Assembly (NCBI GenBank): GCA_973895155.1
Contig: OZ316899.1
Location: 1,697,573-1,761,572, forward strand
Source: Marsupella aquatica
Lineage: Eukaryota > Plantae > Marchantiophyta
DNA: 64,000 nt
Direction of reading: 5' to 3'
Positions within the stretch are counted from its first letter, which is position 1; each line of letters opens with the position of its first letter. Positions 3,977 through 18,451 of the stretch are shown in pieces. The notes beneath the pieces were generated by a model that was given only the letters and a program-made list of their open reading frames with translations, ran no database searches and had not been told where the DNA came from. A program made the position numbers and the translations under genes.

Positions 3977-6900
3977 TCATTCCCTATCCTGTACAAGTTT
4001 GGAGAGGCTACGCATTCCAATTGATTTGATTAGTGCTGTGTGGGTAACTGGAGGTAGGGACTTGGTGAATAGGTCCGCGCTATTCTCAGGGTCGGGGATC
4101 CATTTCACATCAATTGTATTGCCCAGTTGTTCGTGTGCAAAAAAGAACTTAGGAGCTATGTGCTTCGTCTTATCTCCTTTAATGAATCCGGCTGATATTT
4201 GTTCTACGCATGGTCAATTATCTTCATAGATTATCGTAGGCGAATTGAGTTTAGGCATACCTATGGTCTCTTGAATGTAATCAATGACGTTTCATAACCA
4301 GACACATTCCTTGCTCGCTTCATAAAGAGCAATAATCTCTGAGTGGTTCAAAGAGGTAGTAGTCAGAGTTTGTTTCGTGCTGTGCCAAGAGATTGTTGTG
4401 GGTCCGATGCGGAACATATATCCGGTCTGTGATTTGGCATTTGTCGGGTCAGACTAATAGCCCGCGTCTGCATATCCTTTGAGTGTTAGGTCCATGGTGG
4501 TGGGATAAAATAATCCGAGGTCGATTGTCCCACTCAGGTAGCGCAGTATTCGTTTGAGTCTGTTCCAGTGCCTAATCGTAGGCTACGAGCTATGGCGGGA
4601 CAGCAGGTTGACAGCAAAAGCGATATCTGGGCGAGTCTGGGAAGCTAAGAAAAGTAGTGCCCCTATAATGGACAAGTATGGTTTGTCGGGGCCAAGAAGT
4701 GGCTCCTGTTCGGTTCTTTTCCGAAATATGTCTTTCTCTTTATCCAGTGAACGTAGGTCCATTGGTGATTTCACTGATTTTACTGTATGCATATTGAATT
4801 GTTTCAGCATCCTGCGGGTATAAGTTGATTGGTGGAGGAATACTCCACTCATAAGGTGTTCGAACTGCAGTCCGAGGCAGATTGCAGTTCTGCCTAGATC
4901 TCTGGTTTCAAATACCCTATTCAGCTATTTAATTGTGTCATGTAGGATCTTTTCTGTGCCAAATAGGTTTAGATCGTCCACGTAGATGGCCACAATGATT
5001 ATTTCATGTCCTTCATGTTTAATGAATAGGCACGGGGTGATGTCTGATGTCTTGAAACCCATGGCCAACATCTCATGTTTGAAATGTTTATACCAGGTGC
5101 GTCCACTCTGCTTCAGGCCATACATGGATCGGAGGACCTGGACAGCGAAACGAGTTCTTGCATGAAGTGATTTCTCGTTCAGTTTGGGCTTAGTAGAAGC
5201 TCGCCATCCTATTGCTTTTGCAGTGTTGTATAACACTGTTTTGTTTGTGTGGCCAAAAGGGCCTTCGCTCATAGTGTTTGTGTCTGGATGCCCCTTCTCC
5301 CCCTCAATGTGGTAGTTTACTCTGGTTATAAGTTCAGGAGGGGCTTCCATATAGATCGTAGTATCAAGGTGACCGTATAGGTAAGCGGTCACTATGTCTA
5401 GTTGATGCATTATAAGTTTATGGTGTATGGCGAATGCTATTAGGTATCTGTACGTTATCACGTCCATGACCGGTGAGTAAGTTTGGTCATAGTCTCTGCC
5501 TGGGATTTGTGTGAATCCTCTGGCTACTAATCTGGCTTTGTATCTCACAATCGCTCCCTCAACATTCCTCTTTTTGATGAATGTCCATTTGTAGCCCGTG
5601 AGGTGAACTTCCGGCGGAGCTGGTTTAATTGGGCCGAACACTTGCCGTGAGATCAAGGAGTCGAGTTCAGAGTTGATTGCAGTTTGCCATTCTGGCCAGG
5701 CTTTTTGCTGGCGTGCTTCATTGATGGTCATGGGATCAGGTAAGTCCGCTATTATCGCTTGTGAGATTTGGTATGCAAATATGCTATCCAATAATACTTT
5801 AGATCTGTCCCAGATGTTGCCAGTGTGATTATAGTTAATTGCTATCTCTTCGTTTTCTGTTGGTGTAGGTATAGCAGGTACCGTGGGTGCTGATGTCGCT
5901 TGTGTATTTGGCGGGACCCTTCTCTGGCGTGGTTGTTTGTCTCCGGCTCCTATGGGTCGTCCTCTATTCTTCCTCGGTTTAGCAGTCGTAGCAGCTTGTT
6001 GTTCCATTTCGATTCTGGAGGGGGCATTGGTAGCAGGTACGTGGGACCTGGTGATCTGTGCTACATCAGCAAACGCATCAGGTAATTGTTCCATGATTCT
6101 AGTGAGGTGGAGTATTTGCTGGACCTCAGTATCGGTTTGTGCAGTTCTTGGGTCGTTCCATAATTGCGAATTAATTTGCCATGCTAGGTCTTTAGTTGAG
6201 GCGTTAGTCTTATTCTCTCCTGTACTCAAGCTTGGGAATGTATCCTCATAAAAGTGGCAGTCCACAAATCTTGCTTTGTATACATCTGCGGTGGTAGGTT
6301 CCAAGTATCGTATGATTGATGCTGAGTCGTATCCGATGTAAATTCCCTTTTGTCTTTGAGGTCCTAGCTTGGTCCGCTTGGGTCCCATTATCGGGACCAG
6401 AACCTGGCATCCGAATGTTCGGAGGTGTGCTAGGTTTGGCATGGTACCAAATGCTAGTTTGTGTGGGGAGCTCGAGTTGAAGGCCGATGGGCGATATCTT
6501 AGTAATGCTGCTGCATGTAGGATGGCATGGCCCCAGGCTGTTGATGGTAAATTTGTTTGCATGAGTAGTGGTCTTGCTATAGATTGCAGTCGTTTAATCA
6601 AGGATTCAGCTATTCCATTTTGAAAATGGACATAGGCGACTGGGTATTCCACCTCTATGCCCGCTGCTACGCAGAAGTCATCGAATGTCTTCGATGTAAA
6701 TTCTCCCGCATTGTCCACTCTGATTATTTTGATGGGATGGTCAGGGAACTGGGATTTCAGACGTAGGATATGTGCTAATAGGCGTGGGAAGACCAAGTTT
6801 TGTGTGGAGAGGAGGGAAACCTGGAACCACTTGGATGATGCGTCAATTGTTGCAAGGAAGAATCAGAAGGGGCCATTGGGGGGGTCTATAGGGCCACAGA

Positions 6901-7805
6901 CGTCCGCATGGATTTGCTCAAGAAATTGGGGTATGCACTTGTTAGTTGTGGAGGGTGATGGTCGGAGTGTAAGTTTGCCTTGTGAGCAGGCTAAACAGGG
7001 GGATTTCAATGAAGTGGGGTGCACCGTATGTGGAATGCCCTGTGTATCTTTAATAATTTTGTGGAAAGTCTGTGTGCCAGGGTGACCCAATCGGCGGTGC
7101 CATATCTCAGTGAGGGTCTGTCGGGGGCTATCTGTGTAGAAGGTATGTATTCTAACAGCATAAAATCCCAGTGGGAAAGCTATGAGGGTTTCTTTGATCT
7201 CCATGCCCCGTGAGGTCTGGGCTAGAATGTGTAGCACCTCTTGAGTTTCGTATATGCTGGTGTGAATGTGCAGGCCATTCTCACAAATGTCCTTGAAACT
7301 CAGGAGATTTCGTGTGGCCCTCGGGGCGTAAATGGCCGTCTTGATATGGATAATTGTGCCTTTGGGTAGCATTAGTTTTGTTGGGCCATTCCCCTCTTCC
7401 AACTGGTGGTGTCCCATGATTGTTGTCACTCTTCTTTGGGATGGGATTATGTATCTAAAGTAAGCTTTGGTCCTTAAGATCGAGTGAGAGGTTCCACTAT
7501 CTAGTATGCAGCAGTTTGGGTCGTCCAAAGCTTTAGACATCTCGGATTGAAAAGCAAGGTGCAATTCAAGTAATATTTCTGGGGTTTCTAAAAATGCTCC
7601 ATGTGTTTCATATGCTAAGCTGTTTTGATCTTTCTGGTATAATGCAACAAGGTGTGTTGGGGCTCGACATGCTTTCTTAATATGTCCTTTAGTCCCACAT
7701 CTGTGACAAGTTTGCGGGTTCTCGGACTTATCTGGATGTAGTTCTTGCAAGTCTAGGTATTCCGAAATCTGCCTGGTTGTGATCTCCTTTGGCTTGGGGG
7801 TTTGT
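3977..7805 (-). pseudogene. Copia gag C-terminus/pol: zinc knuckle, protease, GAG-pre-integrase, integrase, RT, RNase H; six in-frame stops, no frameshift found
   Basis: CHRCGTKGHIKKAC; ILDSGTSHSIL; WHRRLGHPG; HADVCGP; RVDNAGEF; YKARLVARGFTQ; YVDD; ADLFTKSL. ORFs 6863..7750, 4925..6796 and 4583..4852 share one frame, which ends at TGA 3977-3979. Confidence 0.93.
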
Positions 7806-8649
7806 ATGGTGCGAGGAAACAGGAGAAATTGACAGCGAGGTTAATGTTTGCTAGCGAGGTAAAACTAATGGTCAGAGTGGCAGATTGGGAGGATAGTGAG
7901 GTTTCTACAATAGAAATGAATCTTTTTTCCAGAATGGGATCATTCCATTCTATGTCCAGCGAGGTCGCTAGCCTTCAATCATTGACAAACCATATGAATA
8001 TACACAAGTGAAACACCAGGCGGATATGAAAATGCATAGTGAATCAATGAACTCAGATATCAACCCGTTTTATAAGTCATGTTTCCAAAAAATGTACTGC
8101 CTCCAATATTTTGTCAAAACTGACAGTAAGTTTGAGTAAACATTGCAGAGCTATCCTTTGATTCCCTAGAAAATCATAAGTCACTTGAATGACTTTCATC
8201 TGACTCTATATCATTCCTACTACTAGTATTGCTCTGGTCACTACTAAAATCCCGATCAGTTGACTCAGCAGACTCATCAACATATTGCTTAACAAAGCAT
8301 GCCTCATCGTCAACAAAAGGCAAGCAATACAAATTTTGTTTGGCTCCACGATGTGACCTACGACCTTTGCCTTCCCAAGTGACCACAAAAGCATTATCCG
8401 CCTGAATTGCCAATTTCTCTGCATAGCAAGGCAGAGTAAATGTCCTCTGAGGGGAAACAATCGAAGATTCTTCAACCTTCCTTCAAAGCCAAAATCTCTC
8501 TTCAGAAAACCAGTCGACACGAGTATCTTTGAAATCAGGAACAAAATCACAGCAATATGAATGACAGATCCAATCAAAAGACAATAGCAAGCTTCACCAA
8601 CCAATTGATTAAAGCAAGGGGATCTGGTATAAGCAAGAGGATCAGTACA

Positions 8650-11600
8650 TTACTCCAGGTCAAATTCATCATCGCCATCCTTTGCATCAGGAACATTAGG
8701 AGCTCCATCTTTGTTTTTTGCACTCTTTGATCCTGCAAGAGAAAATTCATCATCTGAATCGAGGTCCTCCAATGTTTCAGTGAGGTCTTCAATTTTCTTG
8801 TGTCTCTCAAGAACACTCTTCAATGCCTTCTCCGCAGCACCATGGAGAACATCCCTATCCTCGACCCCAACAACAAACCTCCCAGAGAGTTCTCCAGCTG
8901 AAAAAGAACTACCGTCTCCAACATTCCAATCGAGCACAATGTCTCTAGGCTTTGTGAGAAGCTCCATAATAGCCTGCATGAATCCAACAGATAATCAACA
9001 AGAACCAGAGAAAGCTAACTCTGCCCTGGTATCCCTTTTTGGATAACAAAGACTCAACATCATCTTATGTGATGCATCTTCAGACGTTGCCAGAGGGACA
9101 TACTTGGGGTCCTTTGGGATCTTCCCATTGAATTCAACTCGGCAAAAGACATCCAGGCTTAAGTTGCAAACCTGGAAAAAACCAAAAAAAACGTCAATTC
9201 ATGAATCCAGGAAGGCCAGCGAGATCGTTGTCAAAACAGCATACTAAATCCTATGAAATTCAGTCAAATCTCACCTCAATGTTCCTCTGTTCAACAGCAG
9301 CAAAAATTTGCTTGTGTGGTTAAATTCTCCACTGTGGAGAACGGCCACATACCCATCATCACTCAACATTGGCCTCATCACTCCAAAGAAATAGTAAGGG
9401 AGCTTCTCAACCCAGACATTCCATTGGGGAACTTCCACATCAGTAACACGAGGCCTCAGCCCAGTCGGAAGAGCTATGAACCCCAGATGGGCACCGGTCC
9501 CAGTGTAAGGCTTCCCGTTTATTTTTAAGGGATTCGGGTGTTCAGAAGAACTAGAAATATCTGAAAGCCATTGATCCCCCTCCCCCATCCAAGCAGGTCG
9601 AACCTTCTTCATACTTATCGAGTCAGCCGTCAAACAAAGATTACTCTTTGCAAGGACATGTCTTCTTCCATCCAACTGGAGTCCACAGAGCCTCGCGACA
9701 CCCTCTCGGATTGACACTTCTTCCTCATTAGAATCTGACAACACTTGAACCTTTCTCTTCTTCTTCAACCTCTGGGACCCTGACTTATCACCTCCCGGTT
9801 TAGTCACAAGTTCAAAATCGGGTGACTCAGGCTCCACATGATCCTCCGGACGACCATTATTCACAGTCTGAACACTCTCGGAACCTGAAGACTTCCTCCG
9901 TTCTAGATACAAAAAGAAACCTAAGAGCCTTAGGATATGTCATAAACTTAATGAGAAGAGCAGCTTGGGAGAGATAAGAGAAGAGAGCTTGGGAGCAATA
10001 AGAGTATATACTTACTTTTCTTTCCAGAAAGCATAGAGCCATCTCTTGATACCTCTTTGGCAGCGTCTCTCTTCAATTTCCAAGGGCGGCTCCTATCCAC
10101 ACTCGGTGCCACCCCGAGGCATGCCTGCTCCATCGACACACACCCAGCAAGTTCTACTTCCGGGTTGCACAATTTAGATTCACTAATAAAAAATTCTGGG
10201 ACCAAGCCACGATTGATCTTTTGAAGCGCAGCTTTCTCTGTGACATCAAATGTCAGTGACCAATTCTCCGAATCTAAATACCAGGGACAATGCAGCACCT
10301 CCCATTCACTTATCTTCCGCAAGGGTTCAATGTCCTCAATAGGGTACATCGAGTACTCCCCAAACTTCTCACAACTGGAATCATCTCTTGCATATTGAGC
10401 CCATTGAGAGAAACATGCCGGGTAACACCACCAAAACGATCTATTTGCCACCTCACGATCCACAAAAAACCTATAAACATACCTTTTTGCCCTCCGACGG
10501 AAAGAAACAATGTCAATCTTTTCCCCAACTTTTGGGGTCCAAATGCTCTTGAAGAACCTTACCTTAACCCGCTGCAGGAAATCTTCTAATTCATCATCAA
10601 TTTCAGCAAGGAGGGATGCCTGACTATTCTCCGGGGAAGAAAGAATTCTAGATTCAGGGACAGTGAGAATTATCTCAGATATTGCTTCACTTAGTAAGCA
10701 CCTCGCAATGGACTCTACCTGTTCCCATGTTGCCCATCGATGCAACCAGAGCTTGGTCTCACTATCCAAAAATTGAGATGGATGAAAATATTGTTTACGC
10801 AACTCTGGTCTGCACTGTGCTTCGAGAAGAGTGCAACAGAGTTGTGGACTCAAAGAAGTTACCCCGGTGAAAAGCCTTGCACGATCAAGGCCACACGAAA
10901 CATTCCCTCTCCCCTTATCATCCGTCCGCTGAGCTTCCTTCCTTTCTTTCTCACAATAATTATGCATCTCAACACATTTCTTGAAGAAATCCCCAAAGTC
11001 TGGATTCAGGAGCGGGGCAAACTTTGGAACTTTGACATTCCAGTCGGAGAGTTGCTCCTTCATCATATCTCGAACTGCAATGTCTTTTGCAGCTTTCGAC
11101 AGAGGTTCGCCCAATTCCTCCTTCAGTGCACACTTCTTTAACAAGTCAGCAGTTTGCGAAGCTATATTTGCAACAGAAAGAATATAAATGCATGCATCTA
11201 AGGTCATATGCTTCGAATACCATGACGGCTTCTTTACGTTTTGCATCTTCTGCTGAAATAACTTGAAATTTTCCGGATCAATTAAATCCTTGTAAACTGA
11301 AAGGTCCGTGCTCAGGATCTTCTGGACCCGATTAGCTTCCAGCACCCATGAATTCTCGACATGGCATTGTGTCAACCTGACAATGAGTATATATTTCAGC
11401 AATCGGCAAGAACAAATTGTGCCCGAAAATGAAGCAAAAAGATCAAATGTGTCCAGGCTCTTCTCACCGGTTGAGAGCATGCATCGCAGATTCAATCTGC
11501 ACGAAAGTATCCTTCTCTCCTTTGAAAATCTTCGAGACAACTCGAGGATGATACTTCACATCGTGAGGATTCTCAACAGCAAGTAGGTTCCACGAATAGA

Positions 11601-12168
11601 GACGGTGATTGCCATCGAATACACTAAACATCTTATCCTTGAGCACAGCAAAATCAGGATGCGAATCACACTCCCTCTCAAAAGCTTCATTCTGCGCCAA
11701 CCACATTGGATCCCAGCTCTGTCTGATTGTGTCATTCAGAAACTGCACGTCCCCATTCTCATTTGTCATTTGCACATAGAAACGAGGCGCGTCCTCAATG
11801 TACCCTTGAGCTCGGAACTCGCTCTTAAGAGTCTCTATCGCATTCAAATATGTCTGCAGAGACCTTACGAGCTGCATGTTCTGCATTCGACATAGTGGAA
11901 TTCTTGGGGGAACAAGAGGATACCCAAATTCGTCTGGCCCAAACTGGTAAAGGTGACGGTTAATTACAACTGAGAAAGGCTCGGACTTGGTAGAATCCAT
12001 CAAAGGTGGCACAATATCCATTGGATCAACAAGCTTTCGCCTCCTTGGAGTCTTCAGCCCCGAAGCAAGTGCTTTGTGGCTTGTAGAACTTCTGGTCTCC
12101 TGATGTTGAGAGGCAGCTGATTGTGAGGCAACGGATGAAATAGACTCAGGAGATGCAAAAGTTGCCAT
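8650..12168 (-). pseudogene. Spliced ~1070-codon gene: ParB/Srx-like N-terminal domain, long central region, beta-class N4C/N6A DNA methyltransferase-like C-terminus; one frameshift (~9315) and one TGA (8995-8997)
   Basis: Inferred exons 12168-11468, 11376-10016, 9902-9275, 9171-8650 with GT-AG introns (first two phase-consistent). FSVFDGNHRL motif. ELLTKPRDIVLDWNVGDGSSFSAGELSGRFVVGVE resembles the N6_N4_Mtase C-terminal block. LGFIALPTG...MRPMLSDDGYVAVLH resembles its N-terminal block. Confidence 0.72.
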
Positions 12169-13824
12169 CGACTGATAAGGAGAAGAGAACCACACGAAGG
12201 GAAGACAAGGAATTGGTACGGTGAATGCAAAGGAATCCAAAGTCACATGTGTTGGGAATCCAAAGTAAGAATTCAGGGGAATCCAAAGTAACCCATACTA
12301 CAGTGTACTTGACAGTGACAGGGAATATCAGTATTTAACACCTTGATGTGAAAGATCCATCAACAAGATCTCAACTCTGTTAATCCCACCAGCACTAACG
12401 TTAACGAAGCTCCAGTTAACGTTAACTTGGAGTCTAGTTAGTATTTACCAACAACTCGGTCGGATGAAATGTACATTCAACTTCAACGGGTTGGAGACAA
12501 TTAATCTCTAGGTGACCAACTTGGGTTGGGTGTCCGTTGAAACTAACCATTCTCCAAAAAAATATATATGCCGATGGAATAAATAAACCAAAGTATTTAT
12601 GAAATGTACTCTTTCAAATCAAGTTAACCCTTCCAACGGTAATATAATTTTGAATCTTTGGTGCATGTAGATGCACTTGGTCACCATTTGGAACGAGTCT
12701 GGATCTTTTTAATGGAAAAATGGACAAACCCCATACGTTGTTTAAGCCCAGTATTTAGACAGTTTTTTGCCAGCGACATCGCTGGCCAAATCACTGTAAA
12801 CCCTAAACCCTTAATATGATGTTTGTCCATTTAAAATGAGCTCTTAATGCTTTCTGAAAATCTTTAATACTCTACAGAATCTTTGAAACTGTTAACCCCC
12901 TCTACTAAAAGCTCTCGGTTTAACTACTATGTTATGACATTTAGGAAATATATTAGGTTTTGGATTCCTGAATTGACCCCCAAACAGAAATAAAAGTATA
13001 TGAAAATTTCTGCGGGTTCAGGCTAGCGGTATCGCTGGCCTTATTGAAGTTTTATGAATGGTTTAATTACGGGACATCTCAGATTCCTCTCTTCTGTTTA
13101 TATCATGTTGTTGGTGAACATGATGTTTTCAAATATCAAAAATATAGATCTTAAACACTGAAAACTTACCTTAATTATGTCTAGCGAGGTCGCTAGCAAA
13201 ACTATTTTTGAACACAAAGCTCCAAGTTCATTTAGCGTCCTAGTACACCCCAACTATACCCCAAGTTCAGGAAATGTGCTAGTATATCCCTCACCATACT
13301 TCTTGTAAAAATAAAATAGGCCATTTAATTAAAGAGTAAACACTAAAATTCTGGTTCATAAGCACCTCATTATTCGAGAAAATTTAGGCTAGCGATATCG
13401 CTGGCAATAATTCTTTCTTGAAGGTATTATAGCCGTTGAGGTTTTGTCGTATCTGCAACATTAAACTGACGTTCCATTATTCTATATTCATCCATGATGT
13501 TTGTGTCCGAGTATTATTCTATATATTCATCCATGATGTTTGTGTTTGGATCCTTGTCTTGGTTCTCTTTTGATGGCTCCGAGCGTCATTTTCTGGCGTC
13601 GAAGCACTGGAGACATTGTTACTCTTGAAGTTTCATGTATGAGAAAGATCACCAATGTGACCGAGGCCTTTCTTTTGACAAGATTTGGGCTCAATAACTG
13701 TGATTTCATTTCGAGGTTGTTCTTTCTTGTTTCACTTCATGGATCTAGGAAGGATGAATTCATTTCAAGAACTCTACATGGTGCAAGAGTTTAGGAGGTT
13801 GCTTCCGGAGATGTTGTTGAGGTT

Positions 13825-16800
13825 TTGTCAGGCAGAGATGATTTTCTCAAGCCTTTTCAGAATACTCGGGAAAAAGTGTTTGTAGACCTCGACTCTCCCC
13901 CGGGGCAAGGAACAAATCTTGACGCCTCTGGTTCTGGGTTTACCACTCTTGAGGATACTAATTCTGTTTTTGGAAGTTGTTCTACAGAATTGAAAGTAGA
14001 GACTCCTCTTCCAAGTGCTCCGGTTGGCCATCTTTTGCAGAAAGTCTACAGAATTGGTGCGCTTGAAGCATTTTTGAGCATTACTGGGGCTAGTGAGCTG
14101 GCACGATTTAGAAGAGATGTCTCTTGGGTTGATGTCCAAGTTGATCGTCTTCCGACAAGTTACAATGGAGACATGGTATATGAGCTTCCTCCAGTGGAGT
14201 CAAGATTTGGTCGCGGTCAAGGGCTTCTCGACATGGACCGTGACAATGATGGCTACCCTTGGACCCGATTGGTCACCACTTCGGCTAACGTGAAGCCACG
14301 TACGTAATCACTGGTCTATTTTCAAGGTCCGTTGCAGTGGTGTTGTGCAATGTCAAAATTTGAATTGTTCAAGGTTCAAGGAGACAGGAGTGAAAAATGG
14401 AGCGGCATTTCCAGGAAGATCACTTATGACCGATATCTTCAAGCCAGGAAACCTGGTTCCGGAAGGAGGTTTGGTTTGTGGGTTTTGTGATGAGAGACCT
14501 TATTGTGTCAGACCTTGTCCAGCAATGATGTTTTATGTTTATGCAAAGCCAAATTTGGACTCTCATGTCTCCAAACACATGTCTAGACTTGCAGTCCACA
14601 TGGGAGTTCATGATCATCCGATCCGGACGGGGAAGTGTCGAGTTGCAAAAAAAAAGTGGAAGATGTTATTCAAGGCGTTCAGTTAGCACATCCCTTGGCA
14701 ACCCCTTCCCGTGTGAAGAATATTTCAATAGGTACATTGATATCGCTTCTCCACCCTGAGGCATGTTATGATCTTTCAAAAGAAGAGGAGGTGGAATTGT
14801 GGAACTCAATGAAAGTTGTGTCACTAGAAACTGCATGGCGTTTAATGTTGGAAGTCGCTGCTAAGAACGGTATTTCCAATGTAAACATAGCTGGTTTTAT
14901 GGCTGACAATGCTGAAGCTGGATGGATTGTTGTGAGAAATGTTTTCTTTGATGGTGTTCGTCTCCCTGAGAAAGAACACAGTGATGCATTCCATTTCTCT
15001 CAGTCACTAAGACGTCATACCATGGAGGGAATTCGTGAAGCGAAACACTCCGAGCATTACAAAATGTGGGAGAAATTTAGGAATGCACCCACATATGTTC
15101 AGGCATACAGAGTGGCAAACGATATTCAAGAGTGGTGGAAGTGTGGAAATTGTCACCCTGGGAAATTGAGATCTTTGCAAGGCTGGATTTCTTGGTGGGT
15201 TGTCCGATGGCGACAATGGGGAAACTTCTTCAGGCTGGTAAGTAAACCATGTTTTTTTGGCTAGCGATGTCGCTAGCATTCTGTTCTTGTTTGAATGTAA
15301 TCTTGAAATCAAGTTTGTGCCTCCCAATGATTGTGTTTGTTTTTGGTTGGACTTCAGACTCAAACAGCAAAGGAGTCAGCGTTGATGCCAAATTGTACTG
15401 GAGTTGAATCTGTACATGGTTCAATGAGAGCTTGTCAAATGAAGAAGAAGATTGGACTGCTAGAAGCTTGTGAACTTGATCAAAATCGTGCTGGTGGGCA
15501 GATTGCTGCCTTTGCTGCATACATTGATGGATGCCACAGGGGACACGGACCTACCATATTTGAACTTGCATATAGGAATGCAGATACACTAGGATCCCTT
15601 GATGCTTTTGAGAAAGCAACCAATCTTCTACTTGAATCATCTCCAAAATATGATTTCCATCGCACTCAACCACTTCATGGAGATCTATGCACAAAGTCTG
15701 GAAAACGAAAAGGCCAGGCTTTGGCTAGAGTTGGTGCTGAAGATTCTCATCGACATGATAAGGTGATGCAGACGGAGACGGTGACAAGGGGCGTACATCC
15801 AAGAAATTTATATTTTGATTTCAGGAGTGTCAATGTCGTGGAAGAGAGGGATGAGTTGAAGGAAACTTCGGGCATACCCCATCCTTCAACATTCTCTAAT
15901 TGTCCAGATCCGTCCGTTGTGATTCTTCTTTCCGATAACGAAGGGAATGGCACTGAGAGCTCAGGAGATGACACTTTGGAAATTCCTAAACCATTGCCCC
16001 GCCAACATGTATCTCCTGTTCGTCCAGAGGAACCAGTTTATGTTTCACCGAGGCAAATTCCTGCGATAAATGAAGTTGATGTCCCATTTGGTACTTGGCA
16101 CTTAAGGCGGTGCGGTAAAGGAAATGGTCCAGTGTGCAATGGGTCTTTGGATCGGACCATTTCTGGAAGAGATGAGTGTCGAAACTTCATCAAAGAAGTA
16201 GGTTATCATACTCGGTCTTGCGGTGTGGTTGGGGTAGCAATCCATGGTTTGAGGATGACTTCACCACATCCTCAACTCTTATACTTCTGCCCAAACAATG
16301 TCTGTCACAAGACCAGGGGTCGCAAGTCAATTGCCCAACTTCCCGTAGTACCCTCATCTCTAAAAGTTCTTCGAGGGACAGAGTTAACTCCTCATGAAAT
16401 CAGCTTCTTGCTTGGCTTGGGTTTTCAGATTGATGGTCTCTATTACATGGATTGTGAACCAGATGGCAGTGTTGCTCCTCCAGGTCGTGTGGAACTTTGA
16501 ATTGACGTTAACTCTTTCCCAGAAAAGGTTGATGTAAACTATTTGAATAGACGACTCAGGACACGAAATGGAAAGGGTGCTCGTCAACGTTTCAACTTCA
16601 CTGCAGAACTTGTTAAAAGGATTCAGTCTGCAAATGAAGAGCAAATGAGGATTGTGAGAAGATCATCCAAGGAAATGGATGGGGAAGACAGTTTTTGATT
16701 GCGACGCATGAAAATAACCCTAGTAAATGTAGTAAATATTGGATTCAGTTGTGCGTCTTCCCATGTTGCTCCTGTGAGGATTTCTATAAGCGGCATTCGC

Positions 16801-16949
16801 ATGGAAAGCCTTACATGTCTTGTAAACATATTCTTTGGGTTTACAAGAATGTTTACCATTTGAACCTAGAGACTTCCAATGTAGTCAAGCAGCCTGTTTT
16901 AACTGTCGCTGAAGTTTCCGATCTGATCCAAAGGGGAGTTGAGGTTTGA
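13825..16949 (+). pseudogene. MULE-like transposase with N-terminal GCM/WRKY-like zinc domain and C-terminal SWIM finger; frameshifted, core apparently partly deleted
   Basis: DGYPW, RCSGVVQC and GVHDHP (GCM-like); FMADNAEAG..VRNVF, DAFHFSQSL and TGVESVH (MULE D, C/DxxH, E); CSCEDF..CKHILWVY (SWIM). Intron 15239-15357; frameshifts at the ACGT duplication (14298-14305) and the A-run near 14646. Confidence 0.82.
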
Positions 16950-17689
16950 GATTGTCCAATTTAGAGTGAGGTTTGGTTTTAATTTAAGGTTTTCATTGGT
17001 TTTTTATATATATTTAAGTACCGTTGGGAGTAGACGTTTTTTGTGCTGGTAGGAGACATGATATTTCCACTCTATATGAAATGACCTTTAATTTATATAT
17101 AAAACACCAGATATTGGTTGATCAGTTTTGCTAGCGAGGTCGCTAGCTATATTTTTGGAAAAGTTTGTAACTGGTTGATGTTTGGACCCTGGTTTGTTAC
17201 TCACTGAGAAAACAGTCATTTTGCCCCGATAAGGTTGGATATCATGTCTTTATAGACTTGGCTTTTTTAATAGTTGGCAGTTCTCCCTGAAATTACTGCC
17301 AACCTTGTAAGTTGGTTATGGTGCCAATTTTGTATGTTTATCTGAGATACCGATGACTCCCAATGTCCAGACCCATATTCAAATTGAAAGTTAAACTCAT
17401 TTCCAAGTGCTTTGGTGATGATCTTTATGTCTATTTCGGTGTCCGACTTGTTCTAAAAAAAAGTTACATTGACATACTTAACTCGAAAGGTTTATTAGGG
17501 AAATAGTAATGATTCAAATATGAACAGACTGTTGGATGGGTTTTTGCTAGCGAGGCTTGCTGTTACTAGCGGCCAACAAGTTCAAACCTTGGTATGAGGA
17601 AAAACAGACCCATTACAAGGAGTTTTTTTACTCGCAACAGCAAAAAAATTACTGTTACAAGAAGATTTTTTCCTGTTTCCTCGCATGGT

Positions 17690-18451
17690 AGTCATACCCC
17701 TTTGGCCTCTTCCTCCCTGGTATGAGCTTCTTCCTCCATGTTGGAAGGAGTTGCCACGTCCACAGTAGGTTTGTCGTCCTCTATTGTTCCCTCTCCCTCC
17801 AAATGAATTGTTAGATCCACGTCTTGATGTGTTGAAATGGGTTTCGGGATTCGCTTGTGGAGGTAGAGTGTCGGGTGGTCGTTGCTTTGTATTTTGCAGC
17901 AGCAAGATCTGATATTTTTCTGCTAACAACATATGCGCGATTAACTCTGAATATGTTGTGAATCTCATATTCCGGTATTGTGTGGATATTACCAGGTTCG
18001 TTGAGTGAAAAGTTGAAAGGGTCTTCTCAATTTGTTCTTCTTCATTAATCGGGTGGCCACAGATTGCCAATTGCGAAACAATGCAAAACAATTCGTTGTT
18101 GTATTCTGCAATCGTCTTGTAATCCTGTACACGTAGGTTAATCCAATCGTGCCACGCTGCAGGGAGGAAGATAGTGCGGGTGTGGTCAAATCTGGCGTGG
18201 AGATCATCCCAAAGTACTCTAGGATTATATGCATTCATATATTGGCGTTTCAAGGAATCGGCAAGATGATGGCAAATCAGGATTAGAGCCTTTGCCTTCT
18301 CTTGTAGTGTGGGGCCATTGTCCATCAAAATTGTATCCTCTAGGTTCTTAGATGCAAGGTGGGCCTCAACATCTAGTGTCCAAGACAAGAAATTAGAGCC
18401 ATCAATGCATAGTGCTTGGAAGTAAAGTTTCTCCATGGTGTTAGTAGTCAT
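17690..18451 (-). CDS. Bianca-type copia gag, N-terminal part (truncated by the DNA transposon insertion)
   Basis: ALCIDGSNFLSWTLDVEAHL..EKAKALILICHHL..LWDDLHARFDH..W..LRVQDYK..EKTLSTFH..QYR..YSELI..LLAE fits the Bianca gag pattern; the ORF tail after 17685 is read into the TIR. Confidence 0.88.

Follow-up and report, generated by a model that had tools for sequence, protein, structure and literature searches.

A transposon of about 9.9 kb in a liverwort, Marsupella aquatica, raises the question of what an accessory gene that joins ParB-like and methylase-like parts does for the element that carries it, and whether palindromes repeated in that element are its sites. The element lies within the window, the 64 kb stretch of DNA analyzed here, where it is bounded by inverted repeats and sits within copia gag, with gag sequence on either flank. 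The terminal inverted repeats are 19 nt long and 95% complementary, and the limits of the perfect repeat are 7811-17684. The first-pass annotation had described an element bounded by terminal inverted repeats and a target-site duplication; the repeats are confirmed, but the duplication and the exact ends are ambiguous between two candidates. A 5/3-bp repeat (ATGGT/TGG) lies directly at the perfect inverted repeat and keeps the copia frame open, and a 9-bp repeat with one mismatch (CTTTGGCTT/CTTTGGCCT) flanks the element on each side at 15 nt beyond that point. The widest limits (Table 1) apply only if the 9-bp repeat is the target-site duplication. In the Mutator (MULE) superfamily, these duplications are 8–10 bp long, and relatives of the element in Riccia have perfect duplications of 10 bp (L001) or duplications of 9 bp (L005).

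As first described, a MULE-like transposase gene on the plus strand and a divergent cargo gene on the minus strand are both present. The reading frame of the transposase is broken, compared with a single open reading frame in Calypogeia, and its last part (16695-16949) contains a CxCxnCxH (SWIM-like) motif. Pfam searches for the MULE transposase domain (PF10551) and SWIM gave zero matches, even with the long Calypogeia open reading frames. By Atlas language-model features, the nearest clusters are all MULE/SWIM families (0.93–0.94, with 167–168 shared features). The element is best explained as a member of a liverwort family of DNA transposons of the Mutator superfamily. The four-exon cargo gene is confirmed by splicing in silico, with DGNHRL near the N-terminus (encoded in exon 1) and GT-AG introns joining the exons, although this copy is broken. 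Four sequencing runs aligned to the region consisted of DNA contigs and showed no splice joints. Exon 3 has one base fewer than most other genomic copies, at 9311/9312, so the junction of exons 3 and 4 is out of phase. At 8997-8995, exon 4 reads TGA in frame at a codon that encodes Arg in relatives. With breaks in both genes, the copy in the window is non-functional: it is a dead, decayed member of its family.

Table 1. Positions of the element, its genes and its repeats in the window.
Feature	Position	Strand	Basis
Transposon, widest possible extent	7796..17699	.	Inverted repeats; copia gag on both flanks
Second target-site duplication candidate (9-bp repeat)	7787-7795 / 17700-17708	.	9-bp direct repeat
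Left terminal inverted repeat (TGCGAGGAAACAGGAGAAA)	7810..7828	+	Inverted-repeat search
Right terminal inverted repeat	17667..17685	-	Inverted-repeat search
Mutator-like transposase gene, several open reading frame pieces with frame breaks	13825..16949	+	Open reading frames; comparison with homologues
Cargo exon 1: predicted N-terminal ParB/Srx-like domain; IPLCR, DGNHR and AMHALN motifs	11468..12168	-	Open reading frame and splicing; fold from homologue model
Cargo exon 2: helical region	10016..11376	-	Open reading frame and splicing; 120 homologues
Cargo exon 3: basic KKKRK linker followed by start of methylase-like domain (ALPTG replaces DPPY)	9275..9902	-	
Cargo exon 4: remainder of methylase-like domain, acidic tail	8653..9171	-	Weak N6_N4_Mtase match
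Palindrome, left subterminal	7955..7972	.	Motif search
Palindrome, spacer between the two genes	12769..12786	.	Motif search
Palindrome, spacer	13022..13039	.	Motif search
Palindrome, spacer	13180..13197	.	Motif search
Palindrome, spacer	13388..13405	.	Motif search
Palindrome, between transposase pieces	15260..15277	.	Motif search
Palindrome, right subterminal	17130..17147	.	Motif search
Degenerate palindrome relic, cargo intron 3	9214..9236	.	Inverted-repeat search

The fold of the N-terminal half of the cargo protein was examined with an AlphaFold model (pLDDT 87.8) of a homologue (P0123:130-700) that is 33–35% identical to the window protein. Against nine ParB/Noc chains, the model gives VIA Z-scores of 8.4–7.4 and covers 176–200 of their ~180–200 residues; the match appears to span both the N-terminal and the helix-turn-helix domains, with large insertions in the model and with the first part of exon 2 aligned to the helix-turn-helix DNA-binding domain of ParB. 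Scores are 6.3 for the pNOB8 ParB-N domain, 5.3 for sulfiredoxin and 5.6 for the best unrelated match; a Z of about 8 is just moderately above background. Noc, ParB and Srx top the Foldseek list against the PDB with weak E-values (0.03–1.5), nearly all of the top 30 Swiss-Prot structural matches are Noc or ParB, a DGQHR protein is matched among AFDB clusters at E 8e-4, and the Atlas matches are DndB and ParB_N. At the level of sequence, neither Pfam nor NCBIfam gave a ParB_N (PF02195) match even with E as high as 10 allowed, and an N-domain profile run against PDB sequences found nothing. The motifs of this region are conserved: DGNHR, which is nearly invariant, in 38 of 44 cases and MHNLN in 39 of 40. 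In the model, DGNHR (G-x-x-R, box II) sits between a strand (138–140) and a helix (144–154), and GNHR and HNLN stand where partition-type ParB, which loads at parS and spreads in dependence on CTP, has GERR and ENLQR for binding and hydrolyzing CTP. These structural matches, led by ParB/Noc/Srx, bear out the earlier suggestion of a ParB/Srx fold, and the model supports a ParB/DndB-like, putatively nucleotide-binding domain, after which comes a helical stretch that probably corresponds to the helix-turn-helix of ParB.

The palindrome, GCTAGCGAnnTCGCTAGC, occurs seven times in the window. When all 64 kb were searched for GCTAGCGANNTCGCTAGC with up to three mismatches, 7 matches were observed against 0.02 expected by chance. 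All seven lie within the element and none overlaps conserved coding DNA, which upholds the annotation's claim of an 18-bp palindrome restricted to the non-coding DNA of the element. The Calypogeia intron homologous to the region of the copy between the transposase pieces likewise contains palindromes.

Relatives show that gene pair and palindromes belong to the family. Exon 2 has 120 homologues (Riccia sorocarpa, Calypogeia fissa and other contigs), and the divergent pair of transposase and cargo is kept in L001, L004 and L005 at 30–55% protein identity; it is conserved across both major liverwort classes. Every full-length element carries a palindrome of 16–24 bp that is specific to its lineage, in 7 to 32 copies: 7 in the window, 23 in L004, 20 in L003, 12 in L002, 8+12 in L001 and 32 in L005. 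Across these six elements, 110 of 114 palindromes lie outside conserved coding DNA, in the subterminal regions, in the spacer/promoter between the genes and in the introns of both genes. Cross-matches between elements occur only between near variants, and all palindromes have an invariant CpG at a fixed distance from the dyad. In Riccia, L005 has amplified its palindromes in tandem units of 64–95 bp, and L001 combines a subterminal type with a different type in the spacer, which could mean two binders. No palindromes were found in the truncated Riccia fragment L006 or in the distant relative L007/L008, in which no methylase part is detectable. In the test that the annotation had proposed, cargo gene and palindrome co-occur and co-vary in 6/6 elements with a full-length cargo gene, window included; since the two genes move as a pair, this result does not distinguish between their proteins as readers of the palindromes.

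We infer that the cargo protein binds the palindromes. A dimer of the accessory protein would recognize these parS-like sites with its ParB-type DNA-binding region and would thereby mark every cognate copy of its own family; the protein also has a basic linker with KKKRK, a putative nuclear localization signal. The most likely outcome would be regulatory, with the promoters and termini of the element kept accessible by anti-silencing or activation, in the way that VANC proteins act on VANDAL elements, and the methylase-like domain would bind DNA/CpG or AdoMet without acting as an enzyme. As a whole, the best explanation is this VANC-like regulation by an accessory ParB/methylase-like protein that reads the palindromes of its own family, and we give it about an even chance of being right.

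The chief rival candidate for binding the palindromes is the transposase, which could use them directly or in assembly of the transposition complex, leaving the ParB-methylase-like protein to do something else. The subterminal repeats of Ac, En/Spm and Mu elements are transposase sites. Consistent with such a role, the palindromes are densest in the subterminal regions and the shared promoter, the distinct type in L001 is limited to both subterminal regions, and the co-variation is compatible with either protein. Transposases can also regulate cognate copies in a sequence-specific way (10.64898/2026.08.24.746577). However, both genes have copies in their introns, at a distance from the ends, which is the pattern of accessory targets (VANC) and not that of known transposase sites, and palindromic sites of 16–24 bp suit a ParB-type protein that binds as a dimer through a helix-turn-helix. 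In addition, inverted-repeat arrays in red algae track a ParB-like gene across different transposase superfamilies. Binding by the transposase is a serious but rather unlikely alternative to reading by the cargo protein.

A profile of the C-terminus matches a beta-class adenine methylase in the PDB (5hek, E 1.3e-7) and CcrM (E 4.4e-4), in line with the beta-class amino-methyltransferase-like C-terminus first proposed. For exon 4 of the window, the N6_N4_Mtase match is weak, with E 0.0016 in Pfam and 6.5e-5 in NCBIfam; several Riccia copies bear a precomputed PF01555 assignment, and in Riccia the domain scores 23.7–26.2 bits, slightly below the gathering score of 26.7, over the motif X-I end only. 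The motifs are in permuted order, with an LPTG block (exon 3) ahead of a D-x3-G-x-G block (exon 4). In AdoMet motif I, G-x-G and the following E of motif II are conserved and F is replaced (DWNVGDG, DFAGGWG); the window has VLDWNVGDGSS and the E in exon 4. At motif IV, the catalytic (D/N/S)PP(Y/F/W) is absent, and its aromatic residue occurs nowhere among the copies compared: the window has ALPTG, L002 ALPTN, L003 CFPHN, L004 FLPNS and Riccia D[LMI]P[ST]G, and the branch of the window also lacks the polar first residue. The comparison supports homology to beta-class N6/N4 DNA methylases with degeneration at motif IV.

An active amino-methyltransferase that tags its own element by writing 6mA/4mC on or close to the palindromes (the invariant CpG being one candidate site) would fit this significant homology, the retained G-x-G and acidic motif II and the strong conservation of D[LMI]P[ST]G in 29/32 Riccia copies, where some enzymatic activity may persist. 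A beta-class 4mC methylase does operate in liverworts, but this active Marchantia enzyme carries TSPPY (10.1101/2021.02.12.428880). With the catalytic motif missing, the self-marking with 4mC/6mA proposed at first is very improbable, and its other proposal, a catalytically dead factor, is favored by the motif comparison. It is just as doubtful that the ParB/Srx-like domain serves transposition or host conflict as a nuclease or NTPase and does not bind DNA at specific sites, with the palindromes as host-factor promoter elements or sources of hairpins or small RNAs: the ParB superfamily includes nucleases and NTPases (PMC10853773) and the nearest structural cluster is of DGQHR/DndB type, but the structural match appears to continue through the ParB DNA-binding domain, and lineage-specific change of the palindromes points to an element-encoded reader and not to a conserved host factor.

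A more specific form of reading by the cargo protein, which we consider improbable, would make this ParB descendant a nucleotide-gated clamp. Such a clamp would load at the palindromes of the element and spread across its full length, its dead methylase domain would occupy the invariant CpGs, and the element would be shielded from silencing by host cytosine methylation; palindrome and reader would co-evolve, each sub-family protecting only itself.

The closest parallels come from four systems. VANDAL elements (PMC5735166; PMC10398659) belong to the Mutator superfamily, as the liverwort family probably does, and both carry an accessory gene. In both, non-coding DNA is where short motifs cluster, introns (as for VANC motif arrays; PMC5735166) and sequence upstream of the transposase among it, and the motifs vary by sub-family and are multiplied by tandem duplication. 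VANC is neither ParB-like nor methylase-like, whereas the liverwort cargo is both, and the motifs of VANC measure 9 bp, lack palindromic symmetry and all point the same way, in contrast to the 16–24 bp palindromes with their invariant CpG. Anti-silencing has been shown for VANC, whereas for the liverwort cargo we only infer it.

In red-alga Plavaka elements, ParB-like and PF01555 accessory genes occur with inverted-repeat arrays: PAG3 joins a ParB-like domain to a 2OG oxygenase and PAG2 a PF01555 methylase to SET, and self-binding at the arrays has been proposed for the ParB-like genes in a 2025 preprint (10.1101/2025.02.11.637652). The PAGs and the liverwort cargo are alike in being accessory genes of eukaryotic DNA transposons with a PF01555 methylase module and inverted repeats inside the element; in PAG3 as in the cargo, the ParB-like domain is seen only by remote or structural comparison, with 7BNR as the best PDB match. 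Unlike the PAGs, the cargo fuses ParB-like and methylase-like parts in one protein, lacks oxygenase and SET domains and has a degenerate motif IV (the PAGs being compared by their published description). Its host is a land plant, its transposase is Mutator-like, and its palindromes are scattered over introns and ends, whereas the Plavaka repeats form one adjacent array.

The third parallel is with the bacterial proteins. The cargo has the predicted N-terminal fold of ParB/Noc and DndB, with G-x-x-R (DGNHR) where strand meets helix and a helical, putatively DNA-binding region behind it, and the cognate sites of ParB/Noc are palindromes of ~16 bp in several copies, like the liverwort arrays. The cargo differs from them in the missing Pfam ParB_N match, the changes GERR to GNHR and ENLQR to HNLN, large helical insertions, introns, a predicted nuclear location in a eukaryote and the methylase-like fusion; searches for bacterial relatives at the sequence level found none. 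As a fourth parallel, phage ParB-Tls loci and the reported ParB-HTH-methylase (Dam) fusions of chlorophytes and chytrids (PMC4738411) also place a ParB-type module N-terminal to an amino-methylase module, but these are of the Dam/M.EcoKI group with intact catalytic motifs, whereas the cargo is beta-class (PF01555-like) without DPPY. The first-pass annotation knew no description of the combination, a statement that the Plavaka genes and these fusions qualify.

In red algae, ParB-like and PF01555 modules were recently seen to accompany DNA transposons; the liverwort family extends this to land plants, which hints that this toolkit is old and widespread, and the Starship DUF3723 genes may be part of it. 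The family is present in both major liverwort classes and has clear lineage-specific DNA sites, which should make it easy to set up tests of binding and swaps. The mechanism by which transposons escape silencing has been worked out in very few cases, of which VANC is the chief one. If the reading given here is true, the liverwort elements would add a second system of self-recognition, one that evolved independently and was assembled from bacterial components for partition and modification.

The cargo gene, which combines a ParB-like and a methylase-like part, is accompanied by a recurrent palindrome of its own at every locus where it is full-length (the window and L001-L005), and the co-occurrence and co-variation of gene and palindrome that the first-pass annotation had put forward as a check are found at all of these loci. 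In the window, all copies within the 64 kb lie inside the element, against 0.02 expected by chance; 0 of the 7 fall in conserved coding DNA, and a degenerate relic is present in cargo intron 3. Counting all loci, 110 of 114 copies are located outside conserved coding DNA, in the subterminal regions, the spacer and the introns of both genes. The transposase intron between ORF pieces t3 and t4 carries palindromes in both the window and Calypogeia fissa (L004), and those of L005, from Riccia sorocarpa, are arranged in tandem units of 64-95 bp with up to 7.3 copies. Cross-matches between loci are limited to near variants. By-eye reading indicates that a CpG at positions 4-3 from the dyad, with a purine after it, is common to every variant, and that the differences fall on the outer positions. 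L001 (Riccia) has two related but distinct palindromes, one found only in the intergenic spacer and the other almost only subterminally; these may reflect two readers or a recent change in specificity. Within the sequence available for each locus, no such repeats were detected in L006 or in L007/L008. In L006 (9001-10972), a Riccia copy, truncation has left just the N-terminal and middle parts. L007/L008 represent a distant relative in which no methylase part could be detected, on contigs of 2.7-5.3 kb, with 27-47% identity over the exon 1/2 matches.

Features of the element, its insertion site and the palindromes of related loci
Locus	Feature	Position	Strand	Remarks
Window	Terminal inverted repeats	7810-7828 / 17667-17685		19 nt, one mismatch; enclose ~9.9 kb
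Window	Transposase ORF pieces	13825-16949	+	End in CxCxnCxH motif
Window	Cargo gene, four exons	12168-11468, 11376-10016, 9902-9275, 9171-8653	-	Placed by GT-AG sites and phase
Window	Copia gag ORF	17685-18451	-	Ends near 17685; RG-rich tail
Window	Copia zinc-knuckle/integrase ORF	6863-7810	-	Runs from 7810 downwards
Window	Perfect 24-nt direct repeat	13483-13506 / 13522-13545		39-nt spacing; in intergenic spacer, adjoining palindromes
Window	Palindrome			GCTAGCGAnnTCGCTAGC; 7 copies
L004	Palindrome			ATTGYTAGCGAGCTCGCTARCAAT; 23 copies
L003	Palindrome			ATTACTAACGAYRTCGTTAGTAAT; 20 copies
L002	Palindrome			CTAACGGnnCCGTTAG; 12 copies
L005	Palindrome			CCGGCGGASTCCGCCG; 32 copies
L001	Palindrome, spacer	8505-9250		ATTCCGGCGAGnCTCGCCGGAAT; 8 copies
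L001	Palindrome, mainly subterminal	4014-4270 and 14352-15100		TCCAGCGGAnTCCGCTGGA; 12 copies; one extra copy at 12453 inside cargo gene

The gene family was traced with an exhaustive HMMER search, in which exon 2 matched 120 proteins (named sources R. sorocarpa and C. fissa, the others from ENA or Logan contigs), and with profile searches, which contributed over 100 further annotated fragments from Riccia and yielded no relative outside liverworts. In word-indexed protein searches, all matches were Riccia proteins, with no bacterial, algal or fungal relatives. Among the eight loci compared, a transposase homologue stands head-to-head with the cargo gene in L001, L005 and L004, matching the divergent arrangement in the window. 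The transposase has no Pfam match, and every one of the clusters closest to it in language-model features is MULE/SWIM. Perfect direct repeats of 10 bp and 9 bp flank the Riccia elements, and flanking direct repeats of 9-10 bp are a hallmark of Mutator. Element ends were also sought in L004, where none could be placed. In L003, a DUF659 (hAT-type) gene (6035-6451) lies at the end of the contig with the cargo gene and may belong to a neighbouring or nested element.

The window element is flanked by the two halves of one minus-strand copia gag-pol. This host is a Ty1/copia element in the order gag, zinc knuckle (CHRCGTKGHIKKAC) and protease/integrase, and it is itself not intact because its pol ORF stops at 6863. 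Two candidates compete for the target-site duplication. The first, ATGGT (or TGG), lies right at the perfect inverted repeat; joining the flanks there, as upon excision, makes the copia gag a single open frame again that extends across the zinc knuckle. The second, CTTTGGCTT/CTTTGGCCT, lies exactly 15 nt farther out on both sides and would provide a Mutator-like 9-bp duplication with GGG termini as in Riccia, but leaves the copia frame broken.

The window, which holds no second copy of the element, carries a relic, because both of its genes are disrupted. The exon 3/4 junction of the cargo gene is one base out of phase, exon 4 has at 8997-8995 an in-frame TGA in place of the Arg found in L002 and L004, and transposase pieces t1-t3, a single ORF in Calypogeia, lie in different frames. 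Contigs from four public DNA sequencing runs of two organisms, which show no splice joints, match this stretch as hundreds of short fragments that are 90-99% alike; therefore, the element family is multi-copy. Relative to the window, most matching contigs have an extra base at 9311/9312, with which the frame would continue into that of exon 4 and the local sequence resembles the relatives. An apparent joint 13197->8005 in these contigs was discarded, as a left-end palindrome contig had merely matched another palindrome copy.

Exons 1-3 have no match in Pfam, NCBIfam or PDB sequence searches, and exon 1 folded alone without an alignment gave an uninformative model (pLDDT 35). Residues 130-700 of P0123, a Riccia homologue 33-35% identical to the window protein, were modelled with AlphaFold2 from a 64-sequence alignment at pLDDT 87.8. 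In VIA-align, the top nine matches to this model are ParB/Noc chains (Z 8.4-7.4), with alignments spanning 176-200 of ~180-200 residues, i.e. the N-terminal and DNA-binding domains; these are followed by the pNOB8 ParB-N domain at Z 6.3 and sulfiredoxin at 5.3, and among unrelated rows the highest Z is 5.6. The ParB/Srx-like N-terminal part proposed from sequence alone is thus supported, at moderate scores, on the Riccia homologue. Foldseek (PDB, Swiss-Prot models, AFDB clusters and ESM Atlas) likewise places ParB, Noc, DGQHR/DndB and ParB_N families first, at weak E-values of 8e-4 to 1.5. The nearly invariant DGNHR of the family occupies the position of ParB GERR, and we infer that AMHNLN, a conserved helix after a strand, corresponds to ENLQR. 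Among AFDB clusters, five uncharacterised A0A388... proteins (555-1172 aa) and several eukaryote-looking entries share the fold of the N-terminal half (probability 0.66-0.97). By language-model features of exon 1 (11469-12168) and P0123:150-330, the nearest Atlas clusters are fungal DUF3723 (0.96) and cnidarian and mollusc clusters, with ParB_N ranking behind them. DUF3723 is a recurrent accessory gene in fungal Starship giant transposons (10.1101/2021.12.13.472469); this link, drawn from language-model features without Pfam support, was not adopted and is kept as a lead.

The methyltransferase-like C-terminus had been proposed, as one of two possibilities, to mark the element itself. Its homology is upheld: the family profile matches the beta-class adenine methylases 5hek/5hfj (E 1.3e-7) and CcrM (4.4e-4), PF01555 scores slightly below threshold in several members, and D-x3-G-x-G with the subsequent Glu is kept. 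The DPPY position, however, reads ALPTG in the window, ALPTN, CFPHN or FLPNS in other copies, and D[LMI]P[ST]G in Riccia; this makes self-methylation improbable, at least for the branch to which the window copy belongs. In Marchantia, the active 4mC enzyme MpDN4MT1 has TSPPY (10.1101/2021.02.12.428880), which is absent in the cargo family, and on comparison of that motif alone identity with or origin from this enzyme was rejected. The cargo protein also has a KKKRK stretch. An acidic tail is conserved at the extreme C-terminus (window 8653-8700; P0123), with DDEFDLE in the window and DDIFGDRE in Riccia at ~30% overall identity, and possibly serves in interaction or activation.

Palindromes in this size range are bound by dimeric proteins of the ParB type, and by this analogy the cargo protein is the favoured candidate for the palindrome reader. 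It is also favoured because the sites spread through introns, as do the targets of VANC, the anti-silencing proteins of Arabidopsis VANDAL elements (PMC5735166), and because red-algal transposons of several superfamilies combine inverted-repeat arrays with a ParB-like accessory gene (10.1101/2025.02.11.637652). A serious rival is that the transposase reads the palindromes instead: linkage between the two genes is constant, a distinct type of site occupies the subterminal regions of L001, and transposases are capable of sequence-specific regulation (10.64898/2026.08.24.746577). The ParB-like domain might also be a nuclease or NTPase, activities represented in the ParB superfamily (PMC10853773).

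Part of this combination, for which the first-pass annotation named no earlier description, has precedents: ParB-methylase fusions are known from prokaryotes, chlorophytes and chytrids (PMC4738411), and self-binding by a ParB-like transposon gene has been proposed for red algae in a preprint (10.1101/2025.02.11.637652). What is new is the fusion of a ParB-like part to a degenerate PF01555 domain, the Mutator-like setting in land plants, and direct evidence of a palindrome that changes with lineage. This anatomy is consistent with a reader that the element itself encodes and whose sites are specific to that element.
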